Below the pieces are notes generated by a model, which ran no database searches, was not told the DNA's origin, and was given only the letters and a program-made list of their open reading frames with translations. This document shows positions 20,723 through 47,483 of a stretch of DNA of 64,000 nucleotides, in pieces; the stretch's first letter is position 1; each line of letters opens with the position of its first letter. The translations under genes and the position numbers were made by a program. Location: assembly GCF_006345805.1 (NCBI RefSeq), contig NC_043003.1:105896001-105960000 (forward strand). The letters run 5' to 3'. Origin of the DNA: Octopus sinensis (lineage: Eukaryota).

Positions 20723-20819
20723 CAGTAACAAAGACTTCAACTGAATTTCTTCCTCCCATTTTTTCTAAATATATCAAAGTCACCACATCTATTTGGTTAC
20801 CAATCTACATGCAGGTGAA

Positions 20820-21200
20820 CACAGCTTCGGTCATCCAGTTGCTGGTACCGACAGCATCGGTCATCCAGTTGCTGGTAGCGACAGCCTCTGTCATCCAGTT
20901 GCTGGTACCGACAGCTTCGGTCATCCAGTTGCTGGTAGCGACAGCCTCTGTCATCCAGTTGCTGGTAGCGACAGCCTCTGTCATCCAGTTGCTGGTACCG
21001 ACAGCTTCGGTCATCCAGTTGCTGGTAGCGACAGCCTCTGTCATCTAGGAGCTAGTGGCAATATTCTTGCCCATCTAGGAGCTAGTGGCAAGAGTCTTCG
21101 CTGTCTATTTGCTTATGATATAAATCTTGGGCATGTACTTGCTAGCGCCAGGAATCTTGTCCCTCTATTTGCTAGTGGCCTCAGCCACCTGGTAGCTAGC
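20820..21200 (+). repeat. 30-bp minisatellite inside a 170-codon ORF (10-aa repeat)
   Basis: Unit ACAGC(TTCG/CTCT)GTCATCCAGTTGCTGGTA(C/G)CG, about 7.5 near-perfect copies and then diverged copies; ORF 20793-21305. Confidence 0.9.
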
Positions 21201-21539
21201 GGCAGTGACTTGACAGTGGCAGTCATCCCAGTTGAGAATGAAAGTGAGACTATATTTTTTAGAGATGAAAATCTGCACAGAGGGAACTTATTAGGGAAGG
21301 TATAAATCCCGAAGCCCCTTCTGACTTGAATGACTTGTCAAGTGGTATTTTTTCGTTTATGGCAGAAAGCCAAGATCTCACGAGTGGGGCACTGCAAACA
21401 GCTTAAGGGCCTTCTGTCCCCAGACAAAAGAGAGACAATGTAACTGCCTCTGTTGTCAGGATATAAACACAACAGAACACTAACCACAGCAGAATGTTGT
21501 CACAGTGTTAGCAGCAGCAATAACAGCAAAACTATTCTT

Positions 21540-21937: not shown

Positions 21938-22942
21938 GAGAAAAATCTAGAGAAATAATTTTTTGTGAATTTAAATTTAGCAAAACGCGAAATGAAACAA
22001 AACGAAACAAAAAATATGCCGATAAGAAGTTTTATTTCTGGCGCAAAATAATTGTAAAATATAAAAATAATAATTTGAGAATTTCTTGTAACATTTATAT
22101 GAAGGAAAACGAAGCTATATTTTACCCAAGTAATAAATGCGGTTCGTAGCGTCGGGAATGACGACCAAAGGGCTATGATTTCAGGATGTCTAAATCACGG
22201 ATCACCTGGACAAATATTTCTGGCGTTTCGTTGTATTGCAAGGGGTTGTGTACGTTATTTTATATTACTTATAGTTCACCGACTTCGTAGTGGGAAATAG
22301 GCGGTCGATCGTTTGGGAATGTTATCTGAAAGAGACTGGTAGCCTGTCCACAGAAGGAAAGACAGAGAGAGAGGTAGTTGTGCTTTCTCAGCAGCTTCCT
22401 GTCATGAAATCGAAGCTTAAGCTCTGATTTTCTAGAAGCCATTTCAAAGTCACTTCGTTTACAAAGATAAATAAAAACACAATTTTTGCAAATTGTAAAT
22501 TCTTCAGTTATTCATCCTTTAATGCCTGTCAAATGTAAAACTCTTGTCAAAAGATTGCCATTTCATTTCCAGAGCATTAAGCAAACCTTCGTAACTGAAA
22601 TCCCGACGGTGGTGTCGCAGCGTCTGAAGATATCATTTACTCTTCTGCATGAACAGAGATTTCCATATCCTTTGGATGACATAGTGCATCTTTTGAGATA
22701 AAATTACAGCAAACCATTGTAGAACAATCTTGGTTGTCGCAGACCTTGTTCAAAAGACATTCTCGAACGTTTTCATCATATTCACCCACCTGTTAGAATG
22801 AAATACGGATGTCAGACGTTAGTTTTGTACACACATACACACACACACATTTAGTGTTACTTTGCCGTGTTATCGACAATTTAAAGGGATATTACTTTAT
22901 GCTATTTTTTAGTTTACCTTTTAATTTTTAAAAACTCTTACG

Positions 22943-26986: not shown

Positions 26987-27166
26987 AAGAGAAATTTCTG
27001 GTTGGATGGAAATGTGTTGTATCCCTGCTTTCTTCATTAATTGTTTGATTTGATGAAAAGAGTTGAGGAAATGAGAAGACGTGACAACATAATGCAGCGT
27101 GATAACAACTGTATTGTCTGTCAGGTGCCACATATGAAGTTCATGGACGTTGAGAACACCGGGAAC
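26987..27166 (-). CDS. SLC30A1-like: SLC30A/ZnT-like transporter, exon 5 (cytosolic C-terminal domain)
   Basis: tttttatcccag| ... |gtaagt, 180 bp, phase 0/0. Translates VPGVLNVHELHMWHLTDNTVVITLHYVV...KAGIQHISIQPEISL, the CDF 'GV..VHELH.W...GI...+.IQPE' signature. Confidence 0.93.
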
Positions 27167-27273
27167 CTGGGATAAAAATACAATTCGCTTGATTAATAAA
27201 GTAAACGGTAGGATTACAGGAAGTTTGAATGAACTGCGTGCATTGTCTTTCCATTATATTTTATAGTTCGTTG

Positions 27274-27520
27274 AGGCGGCGAGCTGGCAGAAACGTTAGC
27301 ACGCCGGGCGAAATGCGTGGCCGTATTTCGTCTGCCGCTACGTTCTGAGTTCAAATTCCACCCCGTTTGTCTGTCCTTGTTTGTTCCCTCTGTGTTTAGC
27401 CCCTTGTGGGTAGAAGAGAAATACGTATTTCGTCTGCAGCTACGTTCTGAGTTCAAATTCCGCCGAGGTCGACTTTGCCTTTCATCCTTTCGGGGTCGAT
27501 AAAATAAGAACCAATTGAAT
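27274..27520 (+). mobile_element. SINE family B, partial dimer
   Basis: Head, tail, then a second body starting at GTATTTCGTCTG. Confidence 0.8.
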
Positions 27521-27796
27521 GTAATCGATTTGTCCTCTACACCCGAAATTGCTGGCCTTGTCCCCAAATTTGAAACCGATATTTACAGCAACATTGCTTA
27601 TAGGACTCAGGGGGTTGGATATTTTTGAAACTATTTTTTTGTTAAAAAACTGTGTCGTATAGGCCATCAGATGCTATAGAATTATAGCGTTAGTTATGCG
27701 CGTTAATGCCTTTTACTGGCCGCATTCTTGTTGCTAATAAACCATTTTGATGGCCATTGGCTCAGATATGTTAACATTAACTCAGTTTTTAGATAA

Positions 27797-28230
27797 CTAG
27801 CAGTATTGCCCGGCGTTGCTTTAGAACTGGAATTTTTGAAAAGAAAAAAAATTTGCATTATAGGTGGATAGATAGACAGACGGACAGACAGACATACAGA
27901 AAAATAGATAGATAGATAGATAGATAGATAGATCTTTTTAAGCGAACATTTTTCTGGTTGAAATACACAGAAAAATGGCGACACAGCAGACAAAAAATCG
28001 TAAAAAATAGGGATTTTCATAGAAAAAAAGCACCTTTTTGATGTAAATAATTTTTGGTGTTAACATGGTCCGATTTGAATTTTTTCTTCTATGGAAGGAA
28101 GAGCAAGCCTTCTTCTATCATACTCTCAATTTTGGTCAACTTGCACTGCAGGGTCTCGGAGGAGATAGTGTTAGTTGAAGGCTACCAAACCTGCCATACA
28201 CAGACAACTTCAGCTTTATATATAGAGAGA
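27797..28230 (-). mobile_element. Non-autonomous Helitron-like element
   Basis: 3' CTAG at 27797-27800 with an adjacent CCCGGCGTTGC hairpin remnant; the 5' end resembles that of the 38313-38843 copy. Confidence 0.6.
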
Positions 28231-29002
28231 TTTTATATTCTTGCTTTTGTTTTGTGATTCTGATGGCGGGGGTGGGGGTGTTGGTTGTCGTAAGACTGTG
28301 TCAGCTGAAGTGGTGCCGTGTTGCATTGCTTGCAGCGGTGCCAAATTAGTTGAAATATCATAGTGTTGGTTGTAGTGGAACAGAGAGATAAGGCAGGAGA
28401 ACAATGTCTGCAGTGTGGCAGAGGTGAGACTTTGGCTGGGAAGGAGAGTTTCTGCATCAGTGTAGCTGTTGTTGTTTGTGTAGTGGTATGATGGGTAACG
28501 CGGCTGGTTGTGTAATGGCTGTAGTGATGGTGTGTTGGTGACTGTGGCGTCACGGTGTGTCGATATTGGTCACTACAGAGTTCGTGTCTTTGGAGACCGG
28601 GTATAAACCATGATATTAGTGATTGTCATAGCAGTTCATCATCATCATCATCGTCGTCGTCGTTGTCACCACCACCACTACCACCACCATGCTGGTAAGG
28701 GTTGGACGGTTTTTCAGGCAGGTAAAGCCAGGAGCCGTATCAGGTTTTTCCACTGCTGCAGGGTTTTAGAAGCGAGAAGAACGAGGGGCAAAAAAGAGGA
28801 AATATGACGATTCAGTGGACACAACCATAGGAAACGTCGGCCTTTCAAGATGTCAAGTTGTCCTCGTCGAGGAGGCATGAGTAGATACTTTGAGAGTGGA
28901 CTCTGCAACAAGGACCCAAGTGTCCAGTGGTGATGACGGTGGGGAAGGATTAAACCGGGAAATGGGAACGAGGCGAATGAGTCACTTCACAGGAACATAA
29001 CT

Positions 29003-29231
29003 ATTTCTTTATTACCCACAAGGGGCTAAACACAGAGGGGACAAACAAGGACAGGCATAGGTATTAAGTCGATTACATCGACCCCAGTGCGTAACTGGTA
29101 CTTAATTTATCGACCCCGAAAGGATGAAAGGCAAAGTCGACCTCGGCGGAATTTGAACTCACAACGTAACGCAGACGAAATACCGCGAAGCATTTCGCCC
29201 GACGTGCTAACGATTCTGCCAGCACGCCGCC
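29003..29231 (-). mobile_element. SINE family B with 17-bp TSD
   Basis: CTTCACAGGAACATAAC on both flanks (28986 and 29231). Confidence 0.9.
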
Positions 29232-29499
29232 TTCACAGGAACATAACGTTTTACATCTCGCACCTGGGAGGTCGTCGTATTACTTAAAAAGAAAAGGGTT
29301 CTTATATCGAAGGAGAGGACTTGAATAGAGATAGGAAGAAAAATAAGTGAGGTGGAGGATATTATGCCTTACCAAGAGCTTTATCAATGATTCAAAAGAA
29401 TGATTTTTTTCTTAAATTAAAAAAAACCCTTGTAAAACCCTGTAATATTGTTGTTGGGAATATTAAAAAATTGTTTCAAGTTTTGACACAGATTCAGCA

Positions 29500-30166
29500 G
29501 TTTTGAGGTGAGGGACCCCATCGATTACATCGATCTCAGTACTTGACTGGTAGTTTTTATCGACCCCAAAAGGATGAAAGAAAAAGTTGGCTCCGGCGGC
29601 ATTTGAACTCAGAACGCTAAAACGGACGAAATACCTATTTCTTTGCTACCCACAAGGGGCTAAACACAGAGGGGACAAACAAGGATAGACAAACGGATTA
29701 CGTCGATTATATCGACCCTAGTGCATAACTGGTACTTAATTTATCGACCCCGAAAGAATGAAAGGCAAAGTCGACCTCGGCGGAATTTGAACTCAGAACG
29801 TTGCGCCGGGTGAAATACCTATTTCTTTACTACCCACAAGGGGCTAAATACAGAGGGGACAAACAAGGACAGACAAACGGATTTGTATCGAGCCCAGTGC
29901 ATAACTGGTACTTAATTTATCGACCCCGAAAGAATGAAAGGCAAAGTCGACCTCGGCGGAATTTGAACTCAGAACATTGCGACGGACGAAATACCTGGAT
30001 TAAGTCGATTATATCGACCCCAGTGCGTAACTGGTACTTATTTAATCGATCCCGAAAGGATGAAAGGCAAAGTCGACCTCGGCGGAATTTGAACTCACGA
30101 CGTAACGACAGGCGAAATACCGCAAAGCATTTCGCCCGGCGTGCAAACGTTTCTGCCAGCTCACCA
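29500..30166 (-). mobile_element. SINE family B tandem array (about 4 bodies)
   Basis: Repeated GTAACTGGTAC...GAACTCAGAAC units, with a single head at the 30166 end. Confidence 0.85.
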
Positions 30167-30322
30167 CTTTGGAATATTCTGGTATCGAAACGTCATTAAC
30201 TCTTGTTACTCTGTAATTCATCTCAGCCAGAATATGTAATACATTTTACGATCGATTACACAATCCATTTAAAAAAAATAATAATCATAATTAACAGTTA
30301 TAATTAATAACTTTTGTCTCAC

Positions 30323-30405
30323 TATTTTCTTGATTTGTTCCATGAAGTCTTCAGCTCGAATATCATTTGGAAGAGTTTGGAGCATGATGTGTGATGTTCT
30401 GTAAA
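30323..30405 (-). CDS. SLC30A1-like: SLC30A/ZnT-like transporter, exon 4
   Basis: cttttgcag| ... |gtgaga, 83 bp, phase 1/0. Translates (L)YRTSHIMLQTLPNDIRAEDFMEQIKKI, the CDF 'S..+LLQ.+P..I' segment. Confidence 0.88.
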
Positions 30406-30436
30406 CTGCAAAAGACCAAAGTATGAGAAAGTTATA

Positions 30437-30560
30437 GGCGCAGGAGTGGGTGTGTGGTAAGTAGCTTGGGCAAGTGTCTTCTACTATAGCCTCGGGCCGA
30501 CCAAAGCCTTGTGAGTGGATTTGGTAGACGGAAAACTGAAAGAAGCCCGTCGTATATATG

Positions 30561-30592
<32 letters not shown>

Positions 30593-30800
30593 AATATATG
30601 CGTGTGTGTGTTTGTCCCTCGAACATTGCTTGACAACCGATGCTGGTGTGTTTATGTCCCCGTCACTTAGCGGTTCGGCAAAAGAGACCGATAGAATAAG
30701 TACTGGGCGTACAAAGAATAAGTCCCGGGGTCGAGTTGCTCGATTAAAGGTGGTGCTCCAGCATGGCCGCAGTCATATGACTGAAACAAGTAAACGAGAG
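30437..30800 (+). mobile_element. SINE family A with an internal deletion
   Basis: Head joined directly to TTGGGCAAGTG; remainder follows the consensus. Confidence 0.85.
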
Positions 30801-32159
30801 AAAAGAGAGAGAAAGAGAGGTTTTAAAGCAAAATGAAATTATGCAATCGTAAAATACGATTCTCTGTGTTAAGGATGGTCAGTGTTACATTGAGACATAA
30901 GAGAAGTTATCAAGAAGAAGAGAGCGAACACATATATTTGACCGTAAATGAAGAAATCAGTGAATTGGGTTGATCAGTGGTGTCTCCTTCACCATACAGA
31001 CCGGGTCTGTCACCCTCCAGCTTCCAGCTGTTCGGTTCAACCATCCTAAATCTCTGTTAGGCATTATATGTCTAACATGTTTAATATTTCATTTAATTCA
31101 TTTCCACATCATCACAAAACGTCGCTTCGCTATCGAGGAGATGACTAACGGATTCGATGAGAATGCTATCAGCGATAATCTGGCATCCTGTCCAGGGAAG
31201 CGAATTATTTCTAACTCGCTTTGCGCCTGAACTCCATAACCATGTAGCACAGTTCATACGAGCCACTAAAATATCCTCTATGTAGCTGCTTGAAATAGCA
31301 GCCAGCTTTCTCTCAAGTTACACACTATCGAACGAAGCAGTCGTACATAAAATATAAGATGTGATAGTCATGGATTTGATCGTGGTTCCGTACGATTCAG
31401 AGCTGACTCGGGATAAACAACACCGCTTTATGCACCCCACTCTCTGGTTTGGAGAGGTTTACGTTAGTTTTGTATTATGTGAAAGTAGGTCGTAGTTTGC
31501 TATAAAATGACCAGTTAGATAAACACCTGCATTAAACAACTGCCTTTTCACACAAATACTTTTTTTCATATAAATACAAATTTCTCTCACATCCCGTGAA
31601 AGATTTTATTATTCGGAAGTCGTAGCTTTCAGGCAATTACTATTTTATAGCGAGAACCTTACCGAGTTTCGAACCACAGCACTCAGGTTCCCCCGCTCCA
31701 CACCTTGGCCTACTATATTCGTTTTAAATTTTGCTACAAGGCTACTGATCTTGGAAGAAGGGGTAAATCGATTACATCGACCCCAGTGCTCAACTGGTAT
31801 TTATTTTATCGACTCCAACATGATGAAAGGCAAAGTCGACCCCAAGACGGACGAAATGTCGCTAAGCTTTTTGCCCGGCGTGCTAAAGATTCTAAAGGTT
31901 CGCCGCCTTAACCGTGAATTGCAAAGCCAGTTGTGAAAACTAATTGTGTCGCCCCCCAAAATGCATTAACTCCTACGCTAATATGGCTCCGCTAATCGGA
32001 TCGGGGTATAACCAAGTAAGCGGAAATATTTTCGCCAAAATCGTCTGCTCGGATCTTCTAGAGAAACTCCAATGGATTATGAAAACTGGCGAATTGAACC
32101 CCCAAGCAGAACCATCTAGAATTGCTATGTTCTGTCTGATGGTCTTACCCTTTGGTGTG

Positions 32160-32541
32160 GAGGTGCAATGGCCCAGTGGTTAGGGCAGCGGACTCGCGGT
32201 CATAGGATCGCGGTTTCGATTCCCAGACCGGGCGTTGTGAGTGTTTATTGAGCGAAAACACCTAAAGCTCCACGAGGCTCCGGCAGGGGATGGTGGTGAT
32301 CCCTGCTGTACTCTTTCACCACAACTTTCTCTCACTCTTACTTCCTGTTTCTGTTGTACCTGTATTTCAAGGGGCCGGCCTTGTCACTCTCTGTGTCACG
32401 CTGAATATCCCCGAGAACTACGTTAAGGGTACACGTGTCTGTGGAGTGCTCAGCCACTTACACGTTAATTTCACGAGCAGGCTGTTCCGTTGATTCGGAT
32501 CAACCGGAACCCTCGTCGTCGTAACCGACGGAGTGCTTCCT
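32160..32541 (+). mobile_element. SINE family E, full length
   Basis: GGTGCAATGGCCCAGTGGTTAGGGC A-box, GGTTTCGATTCC B-box, tail CCCTCGTCGTCGTAACCGACGGAGTG. Confidence 0.92.
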
Positions 32542-32854
32542 CCTCCCCTTACCCTTCGGTACGTTTCTTCACAGAATTATGTACCTCAAGGGTATATATG
32601 TTCTCATTTTTTCTACTTGTTTTGCATTGAACTACTTCAGATGCGACTCGAAGCTATGTTAGTCAGCATGTTGATAAAGCGTTCGAATAATTTCCGCTTA
32701 ATTTGTTGTGGTAAGAAGCTTGCTTCTCAACTACATGGTTCTGGGTTCAGTTCCACTGCGTGGCTGACCAAAGCCTTGTCAGTGCATTGGCAACAGAAAC
32801 TGAAACAAGCCAGTCGTGTGTGTGGTGTGTGTGTGTATGTATTATAAATATATA

Positions 32855-32896
<42 letters not shown>

Positions 32897-33012
32897 ATAT
32901 ATATAACATATATATAATATATATATATATTATATAATAACATATATTTATTATATATATATATAATATATATATATCTATATATATATATATATTATAT
33001 ATATAATATATA

Positions 33013-33800
33013 ACCTTTGATAGGTTTCGGCCAGTATAGGCCCAGGCCATGTCTGACTTAATTGTACCACCTGGTGAAGTCCTTTAGTCATATATGGGGT
33101 ACCATCGCCCACTTTAACAAAGAGTTATTATTGTTGGAGACATATCCGGGTGTAGGAGGTTGGTCCGAGAGTTTTTGAAGAAATTTGTCCAGTGAACATT
33201 TGAATTTTACGGGATCCGTTTCCGTTTTGACGTATTTTGGTATGGTATTAAAGAGAGCTGGACCGGTTGAGGAAACGTAATTGTGACGTAATGTTGCTAT
33301 ATGTACCGAGTTCGATTTTTGTAGTGGACGTATAGCACGGGGGGGGGGGCAAGTCTTGGATGGATCTTAAAATTGATGCCAACATCACTTGTGCAATATT
33401 GATGGAATATTTTCCACATCACACAAATGATGTAGCGCTCCTGGCAGCGTTGGAGAAAGTAAAGATTGAGTTTTTCTAGTCGACCCCAATAATCAATGCC
33501 TCTCATGCCGTCTATCTTGTCATTGATCTCTGGAGTACTTCTACTTTCATAATGAGTTGCTTCGTATGGGGGGGGGGGGACCCCAGTGAGCAACAATACT
33601 CAAGGTGGGCTTGGGCAAAAGTAGAGAAGGATAATGGTGTAGGCATTTCTAGACCGCAAAGTTCTCAGAATCCAGGAGTACATCTTGAGGGCCAAGTCAA
33701 CCTTGCTATTTACGTGGAAACTCCAGCTTAGATTGTTATCAACAATTACTCCAAGATCTCTGGTGTTGTTGGGTGACACTAGGGAGTCGCCCGAGGGAAG
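33013..33800 (-). mobile_element. CR1/L2-type LINE 3' fragment
   Basis: Translates TRDLGVIVDNNLSWSFHVNSKV...WILRTLRSR and YWGRLEKLNLYFLQRCQERYII; frameshifted, 5'-truncated at a (TA)n tract. Confidence 0.8.
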
Positions 33801-33811
33801 AGCATATATAG

Positions 33812-33882
<71 letters not shown>

Positions 33883-33903
33883 CATACATACATACATACT
33901 ACA

Positions 33904-33939
<36 letters not shown>

Positions 33940-33946
33940 TATATAT

Positions 33947-34294
33947 TGTAGGACCCCTCGTTTGGCCTTGCCTGCCTGAGACTCGAAACCGAATGCACTC
34001 GCTTGTTGCTTGTCAAACAAGTGTGTGATCTTTTGTGTTTACATCTCCACACTTGACTTCCTTGGACTTTGCTGGTCACAGAAAGGTCAGTCCTTTGGTT
34101 AGAATTTGACCTACATCCTAGCATAGTCTATATAACAGAGACCATTTCCTTTCTCGCCCTCTTTAGTGTCAGTCATGACCAGGAGCAACACTTCTCTTCG
34201 CCCTTCAGTCGTCATACGAAGAGTAGTTCGGCCGAAATCAAGACTGGACGATGTCACCTTTATCCTTTCTTCCTCTCTTGTCAGCATTATAACA
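33947..34294. mobile_element. Possible solo LTR
   Basis: TG...CA-bounded 348-bp unit with CTATATAA followed by a pyrimidine-rich tract; no clean TSD. Confidence 0.3.
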
Positions 34295-34927
34295 ATAATA
34301 ACAATTCAAAGTAAATAACTCCGAAAAGGGCTTTTCTGCATTCCTAGAGAATATTACCCTCAGCGGCGTTAGTGATGGTATATTCGTGAATAAGTCACTA
34401 ACCGAAATAAGTGGATCTGTTGTTTAGGAAAATACTATTTACTTGTTTAATGATTGTACTGGATAAATAGCGAAAATAACTCTTTCAGTTCAAATACTAA
34501 GAAATAAGCATACTCAATTTGATTTATACCAAATGATTTAGGAAAATGAATGGGTTATTTCCTCTGGCTGTTAAAATCTGGGCGATTGGGTTATTTCCAT
34601 TGATTGTTAAAATGAAATATATTAGAAATATATAAGGATCCCTTCCAGGGGCTCATTCATCGATTTTTTTTCAACAAGATGAGTATGCCACGAGGTTTCC
34701 ACACACGAGTTCTACTCACGTGTCAAGTTAGCTAACAATGTAGGAGGAGTTAGCTAAAAACTCTACAAACACACCCACAGACAGAATTTCCCACATATGT
34801 AGTTTATTATATATATATATATATATTATATCTATATATATGTATAAGGGTGAAAAGGAACACACGGTTGATATATGAAAAAAACAAGTCAAAATAGAAA
34901 AATGCTAAAATAATTTTATAGTGAACA

Positions 34928-34970
34928 TTTCAGTACCGGTTTCGGTCATTTTGAGCCTTTTCCACTGTAA
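34928..34970 (-). ncRNA. Candidate core-variant minimal hammerhead ribozyme
   Basis: Minus strand TTACAG-TGGAAAA-GGCTC-AAAAT-GACC-GAAA-CCGGT-A-CTGAAA: stems I and II form, palindromic stem III ACCGGT, GUA site; the core reads UGGAAAA instead of CUGANGA. Confidence 0.45.
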
Positions 34971-35316
34971 CGATTAATAATTAAATTTAGAAAAAAATAG
35001 AAGAAAAGTTTTTTTAAAGGAATATTTCTATAGTAGTGTTCAGATATAGTGGCATTCTGCCTTTTCTGATTCCTTGTTTGCACAAACAGTTTGAGTGTAA
35101 CGCTCTTAATAACCTTAACTGCAGAACAAAATGGGAAATATTCTCCAAGTCTTAAACATAAAACAACATTATGAAAATCTGTAAATTTATGCATCAGAAT
35201 AGAGTTGGGAAAATTGAAGATGCGTGGAATTTCTACGGGTTTTGTTGATATATTCTAACTAGAATATCATACTTTCTGATAAGTAATGGTAACAAAGCAG
35301 AAATTTCTTTACTTAC

Positions 35317-35514
35317 GTAATGGCAAATTGGTGATAATGATCAAAGAAATAATACAGATTGTAATCAAAGGATCAGCGTAGTGGCACCAGTGACCTTCTC
35401 CGAAAATACTGAGAAGTCCGCTCAAGATTAATCCAAAAGATGATAAATTATTCCCGATCACGTGAACGCAAAGCAGATATAGATCAACGTGACCTTGCTT
35501 TGTTTGAACCTGGT
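35317..35514 (-). CDS. SLC30A1-like: SLC30A/ZnT-like transporter, exon 3 (TM5-TM6)
   Basis: ttttgaattccag| ... |gtaagt, 198 bp, phase 1/1. Translates (Y)QVQTKQGHVDLYLLCVHVIGNNLSSFGLILSGLL...WCHYADPLITICIISLIIITNLPL. Confidence 0.92.
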
Positions 35515-36480
35515 CTGGAATTCAAAAGAGAAAACATAAGAGAGAAGAAACAAAACAAACTCAATAGCAACGCCCCCCCCCCCCACAAAAAAACCCCCAA
35601 CGACAAGGGAATCAACCATCCGTCATTTCCATTGCTCACTATTCCTGATAGAACCGCCTTCTTCTTTGCTCTAGCTTTAGGTCTCCTAACGGTTGGTTCG
35701 GCTTGAAGAATTCTTTTTGTGATCCTTTCCTGCGAGTTTTAATTACATTCCCGTTGTATCGGATCAGATGTCTATTGAACCCAATCCTCCAGTTCAGGTC
35801 TGATAGAACAGAACTACGATTAAATGCAATCAAGCCGTGACCACCCACTCGTTTTTCTAAACATAGAGTATCTTGATTTAATATGTCCTTCCCATTTTAT
35901 GACGGAATGATTTGAAAACAGATTGGCTGCTATTACAAGCAGATCGAACGACAACAAAGAGGCCCGGACGTTGGCTTGTCCTAGCTGTTTGTATTAGTGG
36001 TTTGGTAATGAGGAACAATGATGATCACAATCTTCGTTGGCCATCCGCGACTGAAGGACAGGTGTTCAATACGACTAGGTTCAATTTGATCAAGAGTTTA
36101 TCTCAGAATTCGTAGCATGTATTTGAGACTAGAGAATATCCAGAAAAAAAGAGCATTATCCCCCCCCCCATAAGTGGAAATGTTATATTGCTGCCAAGAG
36201 AGTAAGGAAGACAAGTTTCGGACAAATCTCTTCGTTGTCACTGCTGTATTGCTTCATCAAAGTCCGTAACTTTGCGAGTTCATAAAACACTCGTCATGAC
36301 CCCATCACCCCCCGCCGCACAATAGTACATCGCACCTGTTTATGGCAACAAAACAACTCACCACTGACAAAATACAAACCACCAATTAGGTCGACAATAC
36401 GATCAATGATAGTGCAGCGATAATTCTAAACCGAAGAGCAAAGCAGCCGGTCAGACACCACGATCAAACCACAATAGTTT

Positions 36481-36610
36481 CACGTGATCGGTCTGTTAAG
36501 TAACCAATCAGCCTGAAGCCATCGCATGATTCAGTCTTATAGAATTTTCTTCTTGTGCTCTATAAAAATGTGGTTTTTGGCGGTAATTGCAGAATGTCGA
36601 GGCAGTTGCA
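36481..36610 (+). promoter_or_regulatory. Possible core promoter antisense to the ZnT-like gene
   Basis: CACGTG (36481), CCAAT (36504), TATAAAAA (36561) and a C/A step 30 nt downstream (36590/36591); motif layout only. Confidence 0.3.
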
Positions 36611-37000
36611 CATTCTCATCACCACCTCCACTCGTTTAAGGCAGGTAGCAGACAGGAATTGCGTCACCACGAATATACCGCAATTATTTTCCAGTCGTAA
36701 AGGGCCAACAACAGATTGCTGTATCAGTAAGCTTATCGTAGACTCCCAGTGTGTAATTGCTGTTGTTATTTGTAAAAGACTAAAACAGTTAAAACTCTAC
36801 GTGCAATAATGAAACCTTCCGTTTATTGTTAGAGGGTGTTGTTCAGTTATTTCTTTACGAAGCTCAAGAAATACATTCTCATTCAGCATCTCGGCCAGTT
36901 ATCATCTCAGACCAGACGACAACAAATCACACGGACACAGCTCACGACAATAGTAAAAAAATTATCAGTATCTATTTATACATTGTTAACGTTTACTTAC

Positions 37001-37361
37001 ATGCGATAAGTTTTTCTTCCGACAGCTTTACCTCTTGAGAATGTTTGCTGGTACAAGACAAACTGTTATAGCCACAATCCTTGTCGTCTTCATAACATTT
37101 CAGTTTCTTGTCCTTTCGTCTCTGCTTGTTCAGAGCCACAATAAGCATCATCAAACAAAGAAGGTTGACACTAAGTCCAACACCTCCCATAATAACAATT
37201 ATAGATGGTTGCTTCAACTCTGCTGTTGTGATTAGACGCTTCGCTGTGTGACTGATGATGGATATTGACAGAGCTAAAATGAACGTGGAATTAGCAAAGC
37301 CACCAAGAACATAGCTACGTCCATAACCGTAGGTGTTTTTTTCATTTCTATTTCGAGCTAT
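37001..37361 (-). CDS. SLC30A1-like: SLC30A/ZnT-like transporter, exon 2 (TM3-TM4 and loop)
   Basis: caatag| ... |gtaagt, 361 bp, phase 0/1. Translates IARNRNEKNTYGYGRSYVLGGFANSTFILALSISII...KRLI...PSIIVIMGGVGLSVNLLCL, the 'KNT+G+.R..VLG...N..FL' CDF motif. Confidence 0.93.
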
Positions 37362-38312
37362 CTATTGAATATGAAAATACAAAAAAAGATATCAAGTTAT
37401 AACATATACAGTTTTTGGTAGCATATAAGTCACACTTTCCAAAAATACGTCCCAAACAATAAGTCGGTCTCCCTGGGTCCTGTATGTAAAGTTGGGTCTC
37501 CCAAAAGCTTTAATGCACTTCAAACTTTTTTCCTAGACATGTGCTACTGGAATTGCAGTATTTCTAATATTCCTGTGTCTTTTAATGCCGTTACATACGG
37601 TACATTCCTTCACAATGTCTTTAACTCGATTTCTTCGACTTCAGAAATAAAGTGTCTTTTACACATTAATTGAAGGCTTGTAGACATTTTACTTCCTCAT
37701 TTGAAGAAAATTATAAGCAAGGAGTTGGGATATATTAAAACCAAAAGAAAAAAATAAAGTTTGTGTCGTAGGGAGTTTTCTTATATTGAGAAGTAAAGTC
37801 CCTAGGTACAGCCAGTGGGACTATTTCGGTATTGGCTCAGTATTATAACCGAATATAAATTATCGATTGTCGACACGACACTCTTTCAAAGAGAAATTGT
37901 ATTAGTAATATTGAATTAATAGATCACTTAATTTGTACTAAATTTACTGTTTCATTTATATGAAGATACTCAGCCAGTAACCAGATTTCAGAATTTTGAA
38001 GTGAAGATGCAACACAGCGACCTTTTATCTACAGCTGCACCATTTCTAGCTTCCATGTTGCTTTTAGTGTCGTGAGATCCAAGTCTTTTGACTAATCAAT
38101 CTCATGAAAAAAAAAAAAACAAAAAAAAAAACGGAAATAATTTTGGACCCAGGCGTAATTAACTTTCCGAAAGAGGTTTAACAGCATAATGAAATCCCTT
38201 ACGGATTCCAGCTGTGGAACTTTGATCGCTATATTGTAGAATTTATTCAGAATGGAAGAGAGCTAAGATTGTTTTTAAGATTTCGAAATTTTGTGTTAAC
38301 ATTTATGGATAA

Positions 38313-38843
38313 CTAGCAGTATCGCCCGGCGTTGCTCGGGTTTGTAAGGGAAATAACTTTATAAGCATTTTTAGAGAGTTACTTCCCTTATAGATGCCAA
38401 TTCGGGCTTTCTTAGCCATTTCTGTTTTGGTGTCTTCAAGCCATGAAGTCGTTGTTCTAAAAGAACGCTGGTCTCCTTGACAACGCTTTACGACGTTGAT
38501 TTCCTTACACTCCCTTCCCCACAGCTTCACGAGGGAGGGAAGAAGGGGGAGAAGCAAACACAGGTGCAGGTGTTTGAGCGTGGACGCCAACTCCGCCGCC
38601 ATCGACACACGAAAAATTATGCATTAAAATGGAATAAAAAATGATGTTAAATTATTTTTAAAATCGTAGACTCATCGTAGACGCGCGCTAATACTCGATA
38701 TGAATCACTACTACGGACTCGATATGAATCACGACTATAAGATACCCGAATTTGGTTAAACTGCACCGCAAAATGTGGGAGTAGTTAGGAATCTAAATCG
38801 AAGGGGACAGACACTCACACAACTACAGTTTTATATATATAGA
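38313..38843 (-). mobile_element. Non-autonomous Helitron
   Basis: Minus strand 5' A|TC (38843), 3' hairpin CCCGAGCAACGCCGGG then CTAG|T (38316-38313). Confidence 0.8.
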
Positions 38844-39124
38844 TTTTTATGCTATAAAATTTGACAACTTTTGAGGTTAACGAGAATAAATAGTGACCTG
38901 ATAAGTATTGGTTATGCCTCAACAGATTTTACAGATATAGACAAGCTAACTACGTATATAAATTCATTACACAATATAATAAATATAGAAGATGTTCCTG
39001 TCTATATCATCTTCCATATTTCCATGCGCTTTCATTCGATCGGTCTGATTCTCAATTGTCTTTCTCAGTGAAATGCAAATGTGTAACGAATAAAATATGA
39101 GCGACGTTTGATGTCGTTCCAACA

Positions 39125-39770
39125 TTCTTTTCTACTCTAGACACAAGGCTCGAAATTTTTGAGGAGGGTGGGGCAGTCGATTAGATCGACCCCCATACGT
39201 AACTGGTACTTATTTAATCGACCCCGAAAGGATGAAAGGCAAAGTCGATCTCGGCGGAATTTGAACTCAGAACGTAAAGACAGACGAAATACCTATTTCT
39301 TTACTACCCACAAGGGGCAAAACACAGAGAGGACAAACAAGGACAGACAAACGGATTAAATCGATTATATCGACCCCAGTGCGTAACTGGTACTAAATTT
39401 ATAGAGGGCGGCGAGCTGGCAGAAACGTAAGAGCACCGGCGAAATGCTTCGCGGTATTTCGGCTGCCGTTACGTTGTGAGTTCAAATTCCGCCGAGGTCG
39501 ACTTTGTCTTTCATCCTTTCGGGGTCGATAAATTAAGTACCAGTTACGCACTGGAGTCGATGTAATCGACTTAATACCTATGTCTGTCCTTGTTTGTCCC
39601 CTCTATGTTTAGCCCCTTGTGGGTAATAAAGAAATATGTACTAAATTTATCGACCCCGAAAGGATGAAAGGCAAAGTCGACCCATGCGGAATTTGAACTC
39701 AGAACGTAACGGCAGACGAAATACGGCTACGCATTTCGCCCGGCGTGCTAACGTTTCTGCCAGCTTGACG
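39125..39770. mobile_element. SINE B (plus, 39407-39637) nested in a dimeric SINE B (minus)
   Basis: 13-bp TSD GTACTAAATTTAT at 39390-39402 and 39638-39650. Confidence 0.9.
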
Positions 39771-39841
39771 CCTTGACCCGTACATACATTGAATAAGCGA
39801 TGGGAACGACAGCAGAATATTAAGAATGCCAAATTACTTAC

Positions 39842-40015
39842 ACTCATGACAATGATGCAAACCAGCAACGAGGCTCCATCAGAAAGAACTCGGTAGGAAT
39901 CGATTTCCAAAGCTAAAGAATTTGTCAAAACGCTGAAGTATTTCTCCACAATAAAATAAATGAAATGAAGGGTTGATATGAAAATAATCGAATATTGGTC
40001 ACGTTTAAACGACAT
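39842..40015 (-). CDS. SLC30A1-like: SLC30A/ZnT-like transporter, exon 1 (TM1-TM2)
   Basis: ATG at 40015, donor AGT|gtaagt, 174 bp, phase 0. Translates MSFKRDQYSIIFISTLHFIYFIVEKYFSVLTNSLALEIDSYRVLSDGASLLVCIIVMS, the CDF 'F+VE....+TNSLAL..DS+HMLSD' motif with H replaced by R. Confidence 0.92.
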
Positions 40016-46034: not shown

Positions 46035-46443
46035 TTACTCTTTTAATCTTTTACTTGTTTCAGTCGTTTGACTGCGGCCATGCTGGAGCACCGCCTTTAG
46101 TCGATCAAATCGACCCCGGGACTTATTCTTTGTAAGCCCAGTACTTATTCTATCGGTCTCTCTTTTGCCGAACCGCTAAGTGACGGGGACGTAAACACAC
46201 CGGCATCGGTTGTCAAGCAATGCCAGGGAGACAAACACAAACACACAAACACACACACATACATATATATATACATATATACGACAGGCTTCTTTCAGTT
46301 TCCGTCTACCAAATCCACTCACAAGGCATTGGTCGGCCCGGGGCTATAGCAGAAGACACTTGCCCAAGATGCCACGCAGTGGGACTGAACCCGGAACCAT
46401 GTGGTTGGTTAGCAAGCTACTAACCACACAGCCACTCCTGCGT
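46035..46443 (-). mobile_element. SINE family A
   Basis: Reverse full-length consensus. Confidence 0.92.
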
Positions 46444-46544
46444 AAATTTCCAAATGCAAAAGGCGAGAAGAATAGGACGAGAAGTTATAGGATGTTGTGG
46501 AATCGGTTTGGAATCCTCGCTCAGCCATCTGGAAGTTATTCGTT

Positions 46545-46547
<3 letters not shown>

Positions 46548-46636
<89 letters not shown>

Positions 46637-46818
46637 AACACACAAACACACACACACACACAAAACACACACACAAACACACACACACACAGACACACAC
46701 ACATACACACACACACATACACACACATACACACACACACAAACACACATACACACACACACCACACAAACACACACACACATACACACAACACACACAC
46801 ACACACAAACCACACACA

Positions 46819-46865
<47 letters not shown>

Positions 46866-47076
46866 ACACTCAAACACACACACACACAAACACCACACAC
46901 ACACAACACACCACACACACACACACACACATACACCACACACACACACCACACACACAAAACACACCATACACACACAACACAAACACACACACACAAA
47001 ACACACACAACACACACACACAAACACACAAACATACACCACACACAAATACACACACACACAACACACAACACAA

Positions 47077-47109
<33 letters not shown>

Positions 47110-47176
47110 CAACACACACATACACACACAAACACACAAACACACACATACACACACATACATACACACACACAAA

Positions 47177-47225
<49 letters not shown>
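46548..47225. repeat. About 680-bp degenerate (CA)n microsatellite
   Basis: Direct reading; it produces the HT/CV-repeat ORFs. Confidence 0.95.
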
Positions 47226-47483
47226 CAGTCTCGACTAGACTACCGGTTGTTGTTATACGCTCTATCTTTCGAATGGTGCCACTCCACTGGTTCGGCGAGG
47301 AGGCCACCATCTCCCTAATCGGAAGCCTTGTCCATTGCATGGTTACCCCCTTACAACATAATGGACTGGAGCAATGTGAAATGAAGTGTCTTGCTCAAGC
47401 CCGCACCTAATAATTAGGGCCTTCATATACGATAAGAGAAGGGGAACAACCAAAAGCTGAAGTTTTAAAAAAGTGGTTCAAAA

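Follow-up and report, generated by a model that had tools for sequence, protein, structure and literature searches.

A ZnT1-type paralogue of Octopus sinensis with an arginine-containing site A that is conserved across cephalopods and a protobranch bivalve

To characterize an unusual CDF/SLC30 gene of Octopus sinensis, we analysed a window of 64,000 nucleotides (C7:105,896,001-105,960,000 of the O. sinensis assembly); coordinates are positions in this stretch unless a chromosome is named. The gene lies on the minus strand and has six exons and 382 codons, an intact frame and GT-AG borders at all introns (Table 1). Its spliced coding sequence translates to a protein identical, in every letter, to RefSeq XP_029639351.1/XP_029639352.1, which is labelled "cobalt uptake protein COT1-like", a name that is derived from homology and carries no functional information. 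We refer to this gene and its relatives as R-type, after the Arg in their site A, and found a single R-type locus in the O. sinensis genome. An initial annotation, made from the DNA letters, had described a five-exon gene; its coordinates and AG/GT borders were exact, but its length of 332 codons and its end at 26987 were wrong, exon 6 having been missed. The two codons it had singled out, CGA for R42 in DSYRVLSD and AAT for N200 in VHVIGNN, were re-read exactly where it had placed them. An alternative in-phase splice pair (donor 37032 with acceptor 35509) exists between exons 2 and 3, for which the RefSeq model takes 37001/35514. When the exon-5 donor is left unspliced (26986-26978), the frame ends two codons on (EISLVS and then a stop). 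The same early end is seen in the O. bimaculoides RefSeq model XP_014775396.1 (334 aa) and in one assembled Sepia transcript variant (348 aa), and these forms may represent a short isoform without the Cys-Cys tail.

Domain, fold, tail and tree place the octopus protein in the ZnT1/ZnT10/ZRC1-COT1 subgroup of the CDF/SLC30 superfamily. It matched the Pfam families Cation_efflux (PF01545; 94.1 bits at residues 12-252, cut-off 26.6) and ZT_dimer (PF16916; 30.7 bits at residues 260-324, cut-off 26.7), and because both scores exceed their cut-offs the gene is not a chance reading frame. The best sequence matches in the PDB were human SLC30A10 (E = 7.8e-32) and SLC30A1 (6.6e-31). The AlphaFold (AF2) model contains six long transmembrane (TM) helices and a beta-alpha-beta cytosolic domain (CTD). 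Its mean pLDDT is 71.5, with the helices at 80-94 and a disordered loop and tail, and R42 and H196/N200 lie within confident helices. Foldseek returned human ZnT1 (hZnT1) and SLC30A10 as top matches (target-normalised TM-score 0.68-0.74), and the matches to ZnT1, ZnT10, ZnT7, ZnT3, ZnT8 and YiiP each had a probability of 1.00.

The protein also shares the Cys-rich C-terminal extension with a Cys-Cys doublet that is a feature of ZnT1, ZnT10 and ZRC1/COT1, and its tail cysteines align with those of the fungal and ZnT10 tails. The cysteines of exon 6 are C343, C349, C354, C359 and C360, and all but C349 are invariant across the R-type clade. The HELH motif of the CTD is kept, as the initial annotation had reported; within it E281 and H283 are invariant in the clade and align with hZnT1 E371 and H373. 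In hZnT1 the SCD3 zinc site, near the junction of the transmembrane domain and CTD, is built from these two residues and the tail cysteines C446 and C447, and the octopus doublet is equated with C446/C447 from its motif only.

The four residues of site A are the defining functional element of CDF/ZnT transporters, and the natural TM2 variants His, Asp and Asn serve for predicting metal selectivity. In the octopus protein, site A reads R42-x3-D46 in TM2 and H196-x3-N200 in TM5. HMMER alignment to hZnT1 pairs R42 with H43, D46 with D47, H196 with H251 and N200 with D255. The superfamily motif, (H/D/N)xxxD in TM2 with HxxxD in TM5, is thus replaced by RxxxD / HxxxN. The motif set accepted in the literature comprises DD, ND or HD in TM2 with HD in TM5, and Arg is not among them.

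To estimate how rare this composition is, we performed a profile search of 1.84 billion representative proteins, which returned 13,750 matches, and tallied site A in the best 150 together with proteins from earlier searches (~168 in all). H-D-H-D was present in 142 of them and N-D-H-D, the ZnT10 type, in 11; R-D-H-N/S occurred only in cephalopod and Solemya sequences. A second sample, found with the Solemya query, consisted of 114 further ZnT1-like proteins from gastropods, bivalves, a chiton, a leech (annelid), nemerteans, arthropods, cnidarians and deuterostomes. All but one of these (113/114) were canonical at all ten pocket positions (E-D-H-D-E-N-N-H-D-S). The sole non-canonical TM2/TM5 ligand in this sample belongs to an SLC30A1-like paralogue of Saccostrea echinata, which reads HxxxD / HxxxH and has the TM4 Asn replaced by Ser. 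Across both samples, Arg at the TM2 position was found in none of ~280 other ZnT1/ZnT10-like proteins, so the motif is not one already common among CDF proteins. The literature that we searched contained no report of an Arg-containing site A and no study of a cephalopod ZnT; the R-type site composition is one that we have not found described before.

Further R-type-specific changes occur at positions that are at least 96% conserved in canonical relatives. The TM3 Glu (RAEV) is replaced by Tyr, Val or Asp, the Asn of LNMRG by Asp or Ser, and the His cluster after TM4 is gone. In agreement with the initial annotation, the octopus TM3 reads RSYVLG where 96% of canonical relatives read RAEVLG, and the loop between TM4 and TM5 (residues 131-189, 59 residues) contains three Cys and two His. 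Taken with the exon and codon checks, these readings bear out its description: a paralogue of ZnT1 type whose site A has been rewritten and whose His-rich loop is missing.

Comparison with the two closest human proteins shows what has been kept and what has changed. R-type proteins share Pfam domains and fold with SLC30A1/ZnT1 (8XM6, 8ZB0, 8J2G, and the canonical octopus copy described below), and they retain the equivalents of D47 and H251, the HELH motif and the C-terminal Cys cluster that supplies SCD3 ligands. They differ from SLC30A1 at H43 (Arg), D255 (Asn or Ser), the TM3 Glu (Tyr, Val or Asp) and the Asn of LNMRG (Asp or Ser), in lacking the His-rich loop, and in having a short outer loop between TM5 and TM6 in place of a Cys-rich extracellular domain. 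With the Mn2+ exporter SLC30A10/ZnT10 (9KVX) they share a non-His residue in TM2 and the lack of a long His-rich loop. The Mn-site residues D40, N127 and S252 and the helper E25 of SLC30A10 have invariant R-type equivalents, whereas its TM2 residue is Asn rather than Arg and its D248 corresponds to Asn or Ser.

Orthologues carrying the Arg were identified in O. bimaculoides, O. vulgaris, Argonauta hians, Sepia esculenta, a second probable decapodiform (runs SRR27666085 and SRR27666071) and the protobranch bivalve Solemya velum. Identity to the octopus protein was 67% for Argonauta, 44% for two sets of intronless RNA-seq contigs and 33% for Solemya. R42, D46 and H196 are invariant in all R-type orthologues, as are E24, D39, N124 and S204, and the most conserved segment of the protein is TM2 (ALxxDSYRxLxD). 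At position 200 the octopods and Solemya have Asn, and both decapodiform sequences have Ser. Since the orthologues share R and N/S instead of having H and D, the private decay that the initial annotation had allowed for does not apply. We conclude that the R-type pocket has been kept under purifying selection since before the split between cephalopods and protobranch bivalves. The decapodiform and Solemya proteins additionally bear His-rich C-terminal tails. The orthologous gene has six GT-AG exons in Argonauta and eight in Solemya, and the 83-nt exon 4 recurs in Argonauta, O. bimaculoides and Solemya. In O. bimaculoides we recovered the first five exons; exon 6 was absent from the 6 kb downstream of exon 5, and that comparison covers exons 1-5. 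The O. vulgaris entry CAI9726333.1 (559 aa) has a wrong first exon in its model: after ECLLNK it runs into ~20 copies of LDDRGCRYQQ, which looks like a mis-annotated tandem repeat and not real protein. Within the databases searched, gastropods, chitons and the remaining bivalves gave no R-type sequence, at a sensitivity that left Solemya itself out of the best 150 matches in the representative library.

Species differ in the codon for this Arg (CGA, CGG or CGC), so the residue has been held through synonymous turnover. Each of these codons is one transition from CAY (His) plus a silent change. The initial annotation had argued that a change from His to CGA needs two base changes and is unlikely to be a single sequencing error; two changes are indeed needed, but a single one alters the amino acid, and the argument is superseded by the conservation across species.

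We next measured selection by pairwise Nei-Gojobori estimates of the ratio of nonsynonymous to synonymous substitution rates (dN/dS, omega), for octopod pairs only, the deeper pairs with Sepia and Solemya being saturated in dS (pS > 0.75). The ratio was 0.23 for O. sinensis and O. bimaculoides (dS 0.14), 0.18 for O. sinensis and Argonauta (dS 1.24) and 0.17 for O. bimaculoides and Argonauta (dS 1.17), far from the value near 1 expected of a relaxed copy. By region, omega was 0.09-0.14 for TM5-TM6, which is under the tightest constraint, 0.10-0.13 for the CTD and 0.21-0.39 for TM1-TM4. The orthologue is also transcribed in a cuttlefish: the exact Sepia esculenta R-type protein was present on intronless contigs in 84 RNA-seq assemblies; the species was identified from the run accessions, which S. 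esculenta larval transcriptome papers list as their data. The R-type gene is single-copy, intact and under purifying selection. Of the four refuting conditions that the initial annotation had set (H and D in orthologues, relaxed dN/dS, lack of expression, which was judged in the cuttlefish, and a motif already common), none applied.

To place the R-type proteins within the family, we used two mixture-model IQ-TREE analyses with fungal ZRC1/COT1 as outgroup. The R-type clade had a support of 100/99, with Solemya sister to the cephalopods and a long stem (1.1-2.0 substitutions per site), and the metazoan ZnT1/10 clade that includes it was separated from the fungal sequences at 100/100. R-type proteins stood apart from the canonical lophotrochozoan ZnT1 clade, and the vertebrate ZnT10 clade was separate from them at 100/100; the octopus protein is an orthologue of neither SLC30A1 nor SLC30A10. 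A canonical HxxxD/HxxxD ZnT1 is encoded on the same O. sinensis chromosome, ~98 Mb away (C7:7.366-7.381 Mb), with the motifs AFHMLSD and FLHVLGD and a short loop HSHGSSHG, so the R-type gene is not the sole ZnT1-like copy in the genome. This canonical copy fell inside the lophotrochozoan ZnT1 clade in one tree and was unresolved in the other. The two octopus genes agree in the boundary between exons 1 and 2 and in a small linker exon, exon 4 of the R-type gene.

Some candidate relationships were set aside. A FastTree analysis of 168 rows joined the R-type clade to long branches; we treated this as possible long-branch attraction and replaced it with the mixture-model trees on fewer rows. The profile search gave 450 bits to an Intoshia match with a canonical site, which suggested a close relative; the protein consists of two canonical copies fused in tandem, whose scores add up, and it was rejected. 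Separately, three unplaced O. sinensis contigs (C9002, C866 and C9530) are AT-rich (GC 0.29-0.36) and hold intronless CDF matches over the whole Pfam profile. One carries a 462-codon open frame with AEAVHSLVD (HxxxD) and two have an in-frame TGA or TAG; these contigs could be retrocopies or DNA of a co-sequenced organism.

The initial annotation had proposed either an altered specificity or a non-transporting regulatory subunit, and either reading may hold. We tentatively favour a non-pumping modulatory or sensing protomer that would dimerise and bind cytosolic zinc without exchanging Zn2+ at site A. Here the canonical tetrahedral site (two His and two Asp) has become Arg-Asp / His-Asn(Ser), with one imidazole exchanged for a guanidinium and one carboxylate for an amide or a hydroxyl. 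A guanidinium is protonated throughout and is no metal ligand. These swaps therefore take the formal charge of the apo cluster from -2 to 0. The position of the Arg side chain, the loss of Zn transport and the modulatory role are what we infer from these substitutions: the guanidinium of Arg42 would occupy the metal pocket or lie next to it, forming a pair with Asp46 as a tethered cation, and site A of such a protomer would be unable to bind or exchange Zn2+. The CTD, the HELH motif and the Cys-Cys doublet, which supply SCD3-type ligands, are kept, and it is therefore probable that the protein can still form dimers and bind zinc in the cytosol. It might work as a homodimer or paired with the canonical ZnT1.

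Published mutants and relatives are consistent with this reading. Zn efflux is lost in the hZnT1 double mutants H43A/H251A, D47A/D255A and D47N/D255N (PMC11051671), and the D248N mutation abolishes Mn transport by SLC30A10 (PMC12480533). Two site ligands are missing from ZnT6, for which a role as auxiliary protomer of ZnT5 has been put forward (PMC7949119). Like the R-type proteins, ZnT6 has lost two of the four site A ligands while its CTD is intact and it has long been conserved, and it serves as our working analogy for a non-pumping protomer. The R-type would be a ZnT6-like solution that arose independently within the ZnT1/10 branch; the two are not close relatives, since ZnT6 belongs to a different CDF subgroup. 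ZnT6 acts in a ZnT5-ZnT6 heterodimer, whereas the octopus protein has a candidate partner only, the canonical ZnT1 in its genome. A basic side chain in a metal site has a precedent among zinc transporters in ZIP2 (SLC39A2), which has a lysine in metal site M2 (PMC7949119), although ZIP2 is of an unrelated fold and family and its second site, M1, still transports zinc.

Several observations weigh against a non-pumping protomer. E24, D39, D46, N124, H196 and S204 are strictly invariant over the cephalopod-bivalve split and TM5-TM6 is constrained as much as the CTD, which fits a still-binding pocket at least as well as a dead site. The ZnT6 analogy is imperfect: the ligands of ZnT6 were lost to hydrophobic residues, none of them charged, and not to basic and polar ones as in the R-type. 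The His-rich tails of the decapodiform and Solemya proteins hint at continued metal handling. The TM2 position is also not wholly indispensable, since hZnT1 tolerates H43D and H43N, although H43A costs it 70% of its activity; our literature search turned up no H43R mutant. Finally, no full-length octopus transcript was recovered.

We consider it almost as likely as a modulatory protomer, and thus a serious possibility, that the protein is still a transporter with a new substrate or a new coupling. The all-oxygen upper site (D39, N124 and S204, with E24 nearby), whose counterpart SLC30A10 uses for Mn2+, might now take a hard or monovalent cation. Alternatively, Arg42 might stand in for the counter-ion and thereby free transport from coupling to H+ or Ca2+. 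The invariance of D39, E24, N124 and S204, equivalents of SLC30A10 D40, E25, N127 and S252, fits either variant, as do the conservation of TM2 and TM5, which change least within the protein, the low omega of TM5-TM6 and the His-rich tails. H43N enables Mn transport by hZnT1, and the bacterial CDF protein MceT ('Na-CDF', Planococcus dechangensis), whose site A has been rewritten, is a Na+(Li+,K+)/H+ antiporter (PMC6440370). MceT differs in being bacterial, in a motif, Y-S / Q-D, that contains no basic residue, and in having its Na+/H+ antiport demonstrated by experiment. Arguing against a new transport activity, the equivalent of D248, a ligand common to the Zn and Mn sites and one whose change to Asn abolishes SLC30A10 transport, is Asn or Ser in the R-type; position 200 switches between the two inside the clade; and no CDF protein with a basic site A residue has been shown to transport in the literature searched.

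It is unlikely that the R-type is an ordinary zinc exporter in which Zn2+ is bound, for example, by D46, H196 and N200 aided by D39 or water, and the role of Arg42 is confined to adjusting affinity or pH dependence. D46 and H196, half of the site A ligands, are retained, the fold, CTD and Cys tail are ZnT1-like, and hZnT1 is active with H43D or H43N and keeps ~30% of its activity with H43A. However, the site has lost a ligand and a negative charge and gained a fixed positive charge, and the D-to-N double mutants of hZnT1 are inactive. The canonical site is kept in 113 of 114 and 142 of ~168 ZnT1-like proteins, which argues that the change was not neutral. The long stem of the R-type clade and the retention of a canonical ZnT1 alongside it also speak against an unchanged function.

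We also examined whether the R-types might belong to an older group. Three protostome paralogues have a degenerate site A with a basic residue: Limulus polyphemus XP_022249051.1 (TM2 DSYHTLYN, TM5 VLDFLRDSC), Diaphorina citri XP_026680717.1 (TM2 DSYHVLCN, TM5 AILFKRL) and Lineus longissimus XP_064641382.1 (TM2 HGLHTLYK, TM5 without His or Asp). All three are long branches that lack the His-rich loop and keep an HE[LFI]H or HDLH motif and the Cys tail. Lineus grouped with the R-type clade at a support of 93/94. A tree constrained to hold the R-types and all three paralogues as one clade had a likelihood above that of the free tree (p-AU 0.70), and a mollusc-only duplication was not rejected either (p-AU 0.27). 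These possibly related paralogues suggest that no single new coordination geometry is required. A bolder proposal, which we regard as improbable, is that the R-types belong to an old protostome-wide lineage derived from ZnT1 in which a tethered basic side chain replaces the transported metal; in molluscs this side chain is Arg at the TM2 His position, in the nemertean Lys at that of the TM2 Asp, and in the horseshoe crab and the psyllid Arg or Lys within the TM5 motif. Such proteins would form a new CDF class distinct from metal antiporters; they might, for instance, be regulatory protomers that sense zinc or provide an uncoupled pathway for ions.

Decay of a duplicate, a peculiarity private to one lineage, or an error of annotation or assembly might account for a gene that evolves several times faster than canonical ZnT1 (branch lengths), had no counterpart among the gastropods, chitons and remaining bivalves of the searched databases and yielded no full-length octopus transcript, but this explanation is effectively refuted by the intact frame with six GT-AG exons in both O. 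sinensis and Argonauta, the dN/dS of ~0.2, the Arg kept through synonymous codon turnover, the abundant Sepia esculenta transcripts and the 100/99 support for a clade that includes a bivalve.

The window holds other features, mostly repeats (Table 1). A short interspersed repeat is present in many copies on both strands, in introns 1, 3 and 4. It is recognised by the pseudo-frame SEFKFRRGRLCLSSFRGR or, in reverse, YRPRKDERQSRPRRNLNSE, and occurs in the canonical ZnT1 locus as well. Rfam gave no match anywhere in the window, this repeat included. Intron 3 contains a retrotransposon-like fragment of an open reading frame, GRLEKLNLYFLQRCQERYIICVMWKIF, which is 51% identical to one upstream of the Argonauta orthologue. 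This likeness reflects a shared repeat family and not synteny; synteny between the Argonauta locus and the window was considered and rejected, the flanking open reading frames matching repeat fragments only. A long imperfect microsatellite of (CA)n/(TG)n type gives rise to His/Thr-only and Cys/Val-only open frames of up to 347 codons, and it accounts for the spike in GC skew and AT skew at 46-48 kb. An open frame of repeated HPVAG(T/S)DS(F/L)(G/C) units, which lies just downstream of the gene, is probably a 30-nt minisatellite.

Table 1 Exons and selected residues of the R-type gene, and other features of the window
Feature	Position	Strand	Content
Exon 1	39842..40015	-	Start codon 40015-40013; TM1 and TM2; basis: spliced model identical to XP_029639351.1
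Exon 1 residues	E24 39946-39944; D39 39901-39899; R42 (CGA) 39892-39890; D46 39880-39878	-	
Exon 2	37001..37361	-	TM3, TM4 and start of the Lys/Asp/Cys-rich cytosolic loop without His cluster
Exon 2 residues	Y75 37313-37311; N124 37166-37164	-	Y75 in TM3 RSYVLG (canonical Glu); N124 in TM4
Exon 3	35317..35514	-	Loop end, TM5, short outer loop WCHYADP, TM6
Exon 3 residues	H196 35464-35462; N200 (AAT) 35452-35450; S204 35440-35438	-	N200 in VHVIGNN
Exon 4	30323..30405	-	83 nt; linker from TM6 to CTD, IMLQTLPNDIRAEDFMEQIKK
Exon 5	26987..27166	-	Cytosolic domain; H280-E281-L282-H283 at 27145-27134; donor GT 26986-26985
Exon 6	22637..22789	-	50 codons (22789-22640); Cys-rich C-terminal tail; TAA stop 22639-22637
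Short interspersed repeat	~27.2-27.6, 29.0-30.2, 31.6-31.9 and 39.1-39.8 kb	both	Many copies
Retrotransposon-like fragment	33235-33600	-	Intron 3
Microsatellite	46195-47410		Imperfect (CA)n/(TG)n type
Probable minisatellite	20769-21305	+	Repeated 10-residue units in an open frame

Together, these data indicate that the R-type pocket probably marks a new functional variant of a known metal transporter and not a decaying copy. With a permanently charged Arg and one neutralised Asp in site A, the CDF scaffold may serve another purpose, without pumping, beyond the pair of ZnT5 and ZnT6. Alternatively, the pocket may have been retuned away from both Zn and Mn. Whichever holds, the annotation rules for metal transporters would be sharpened.

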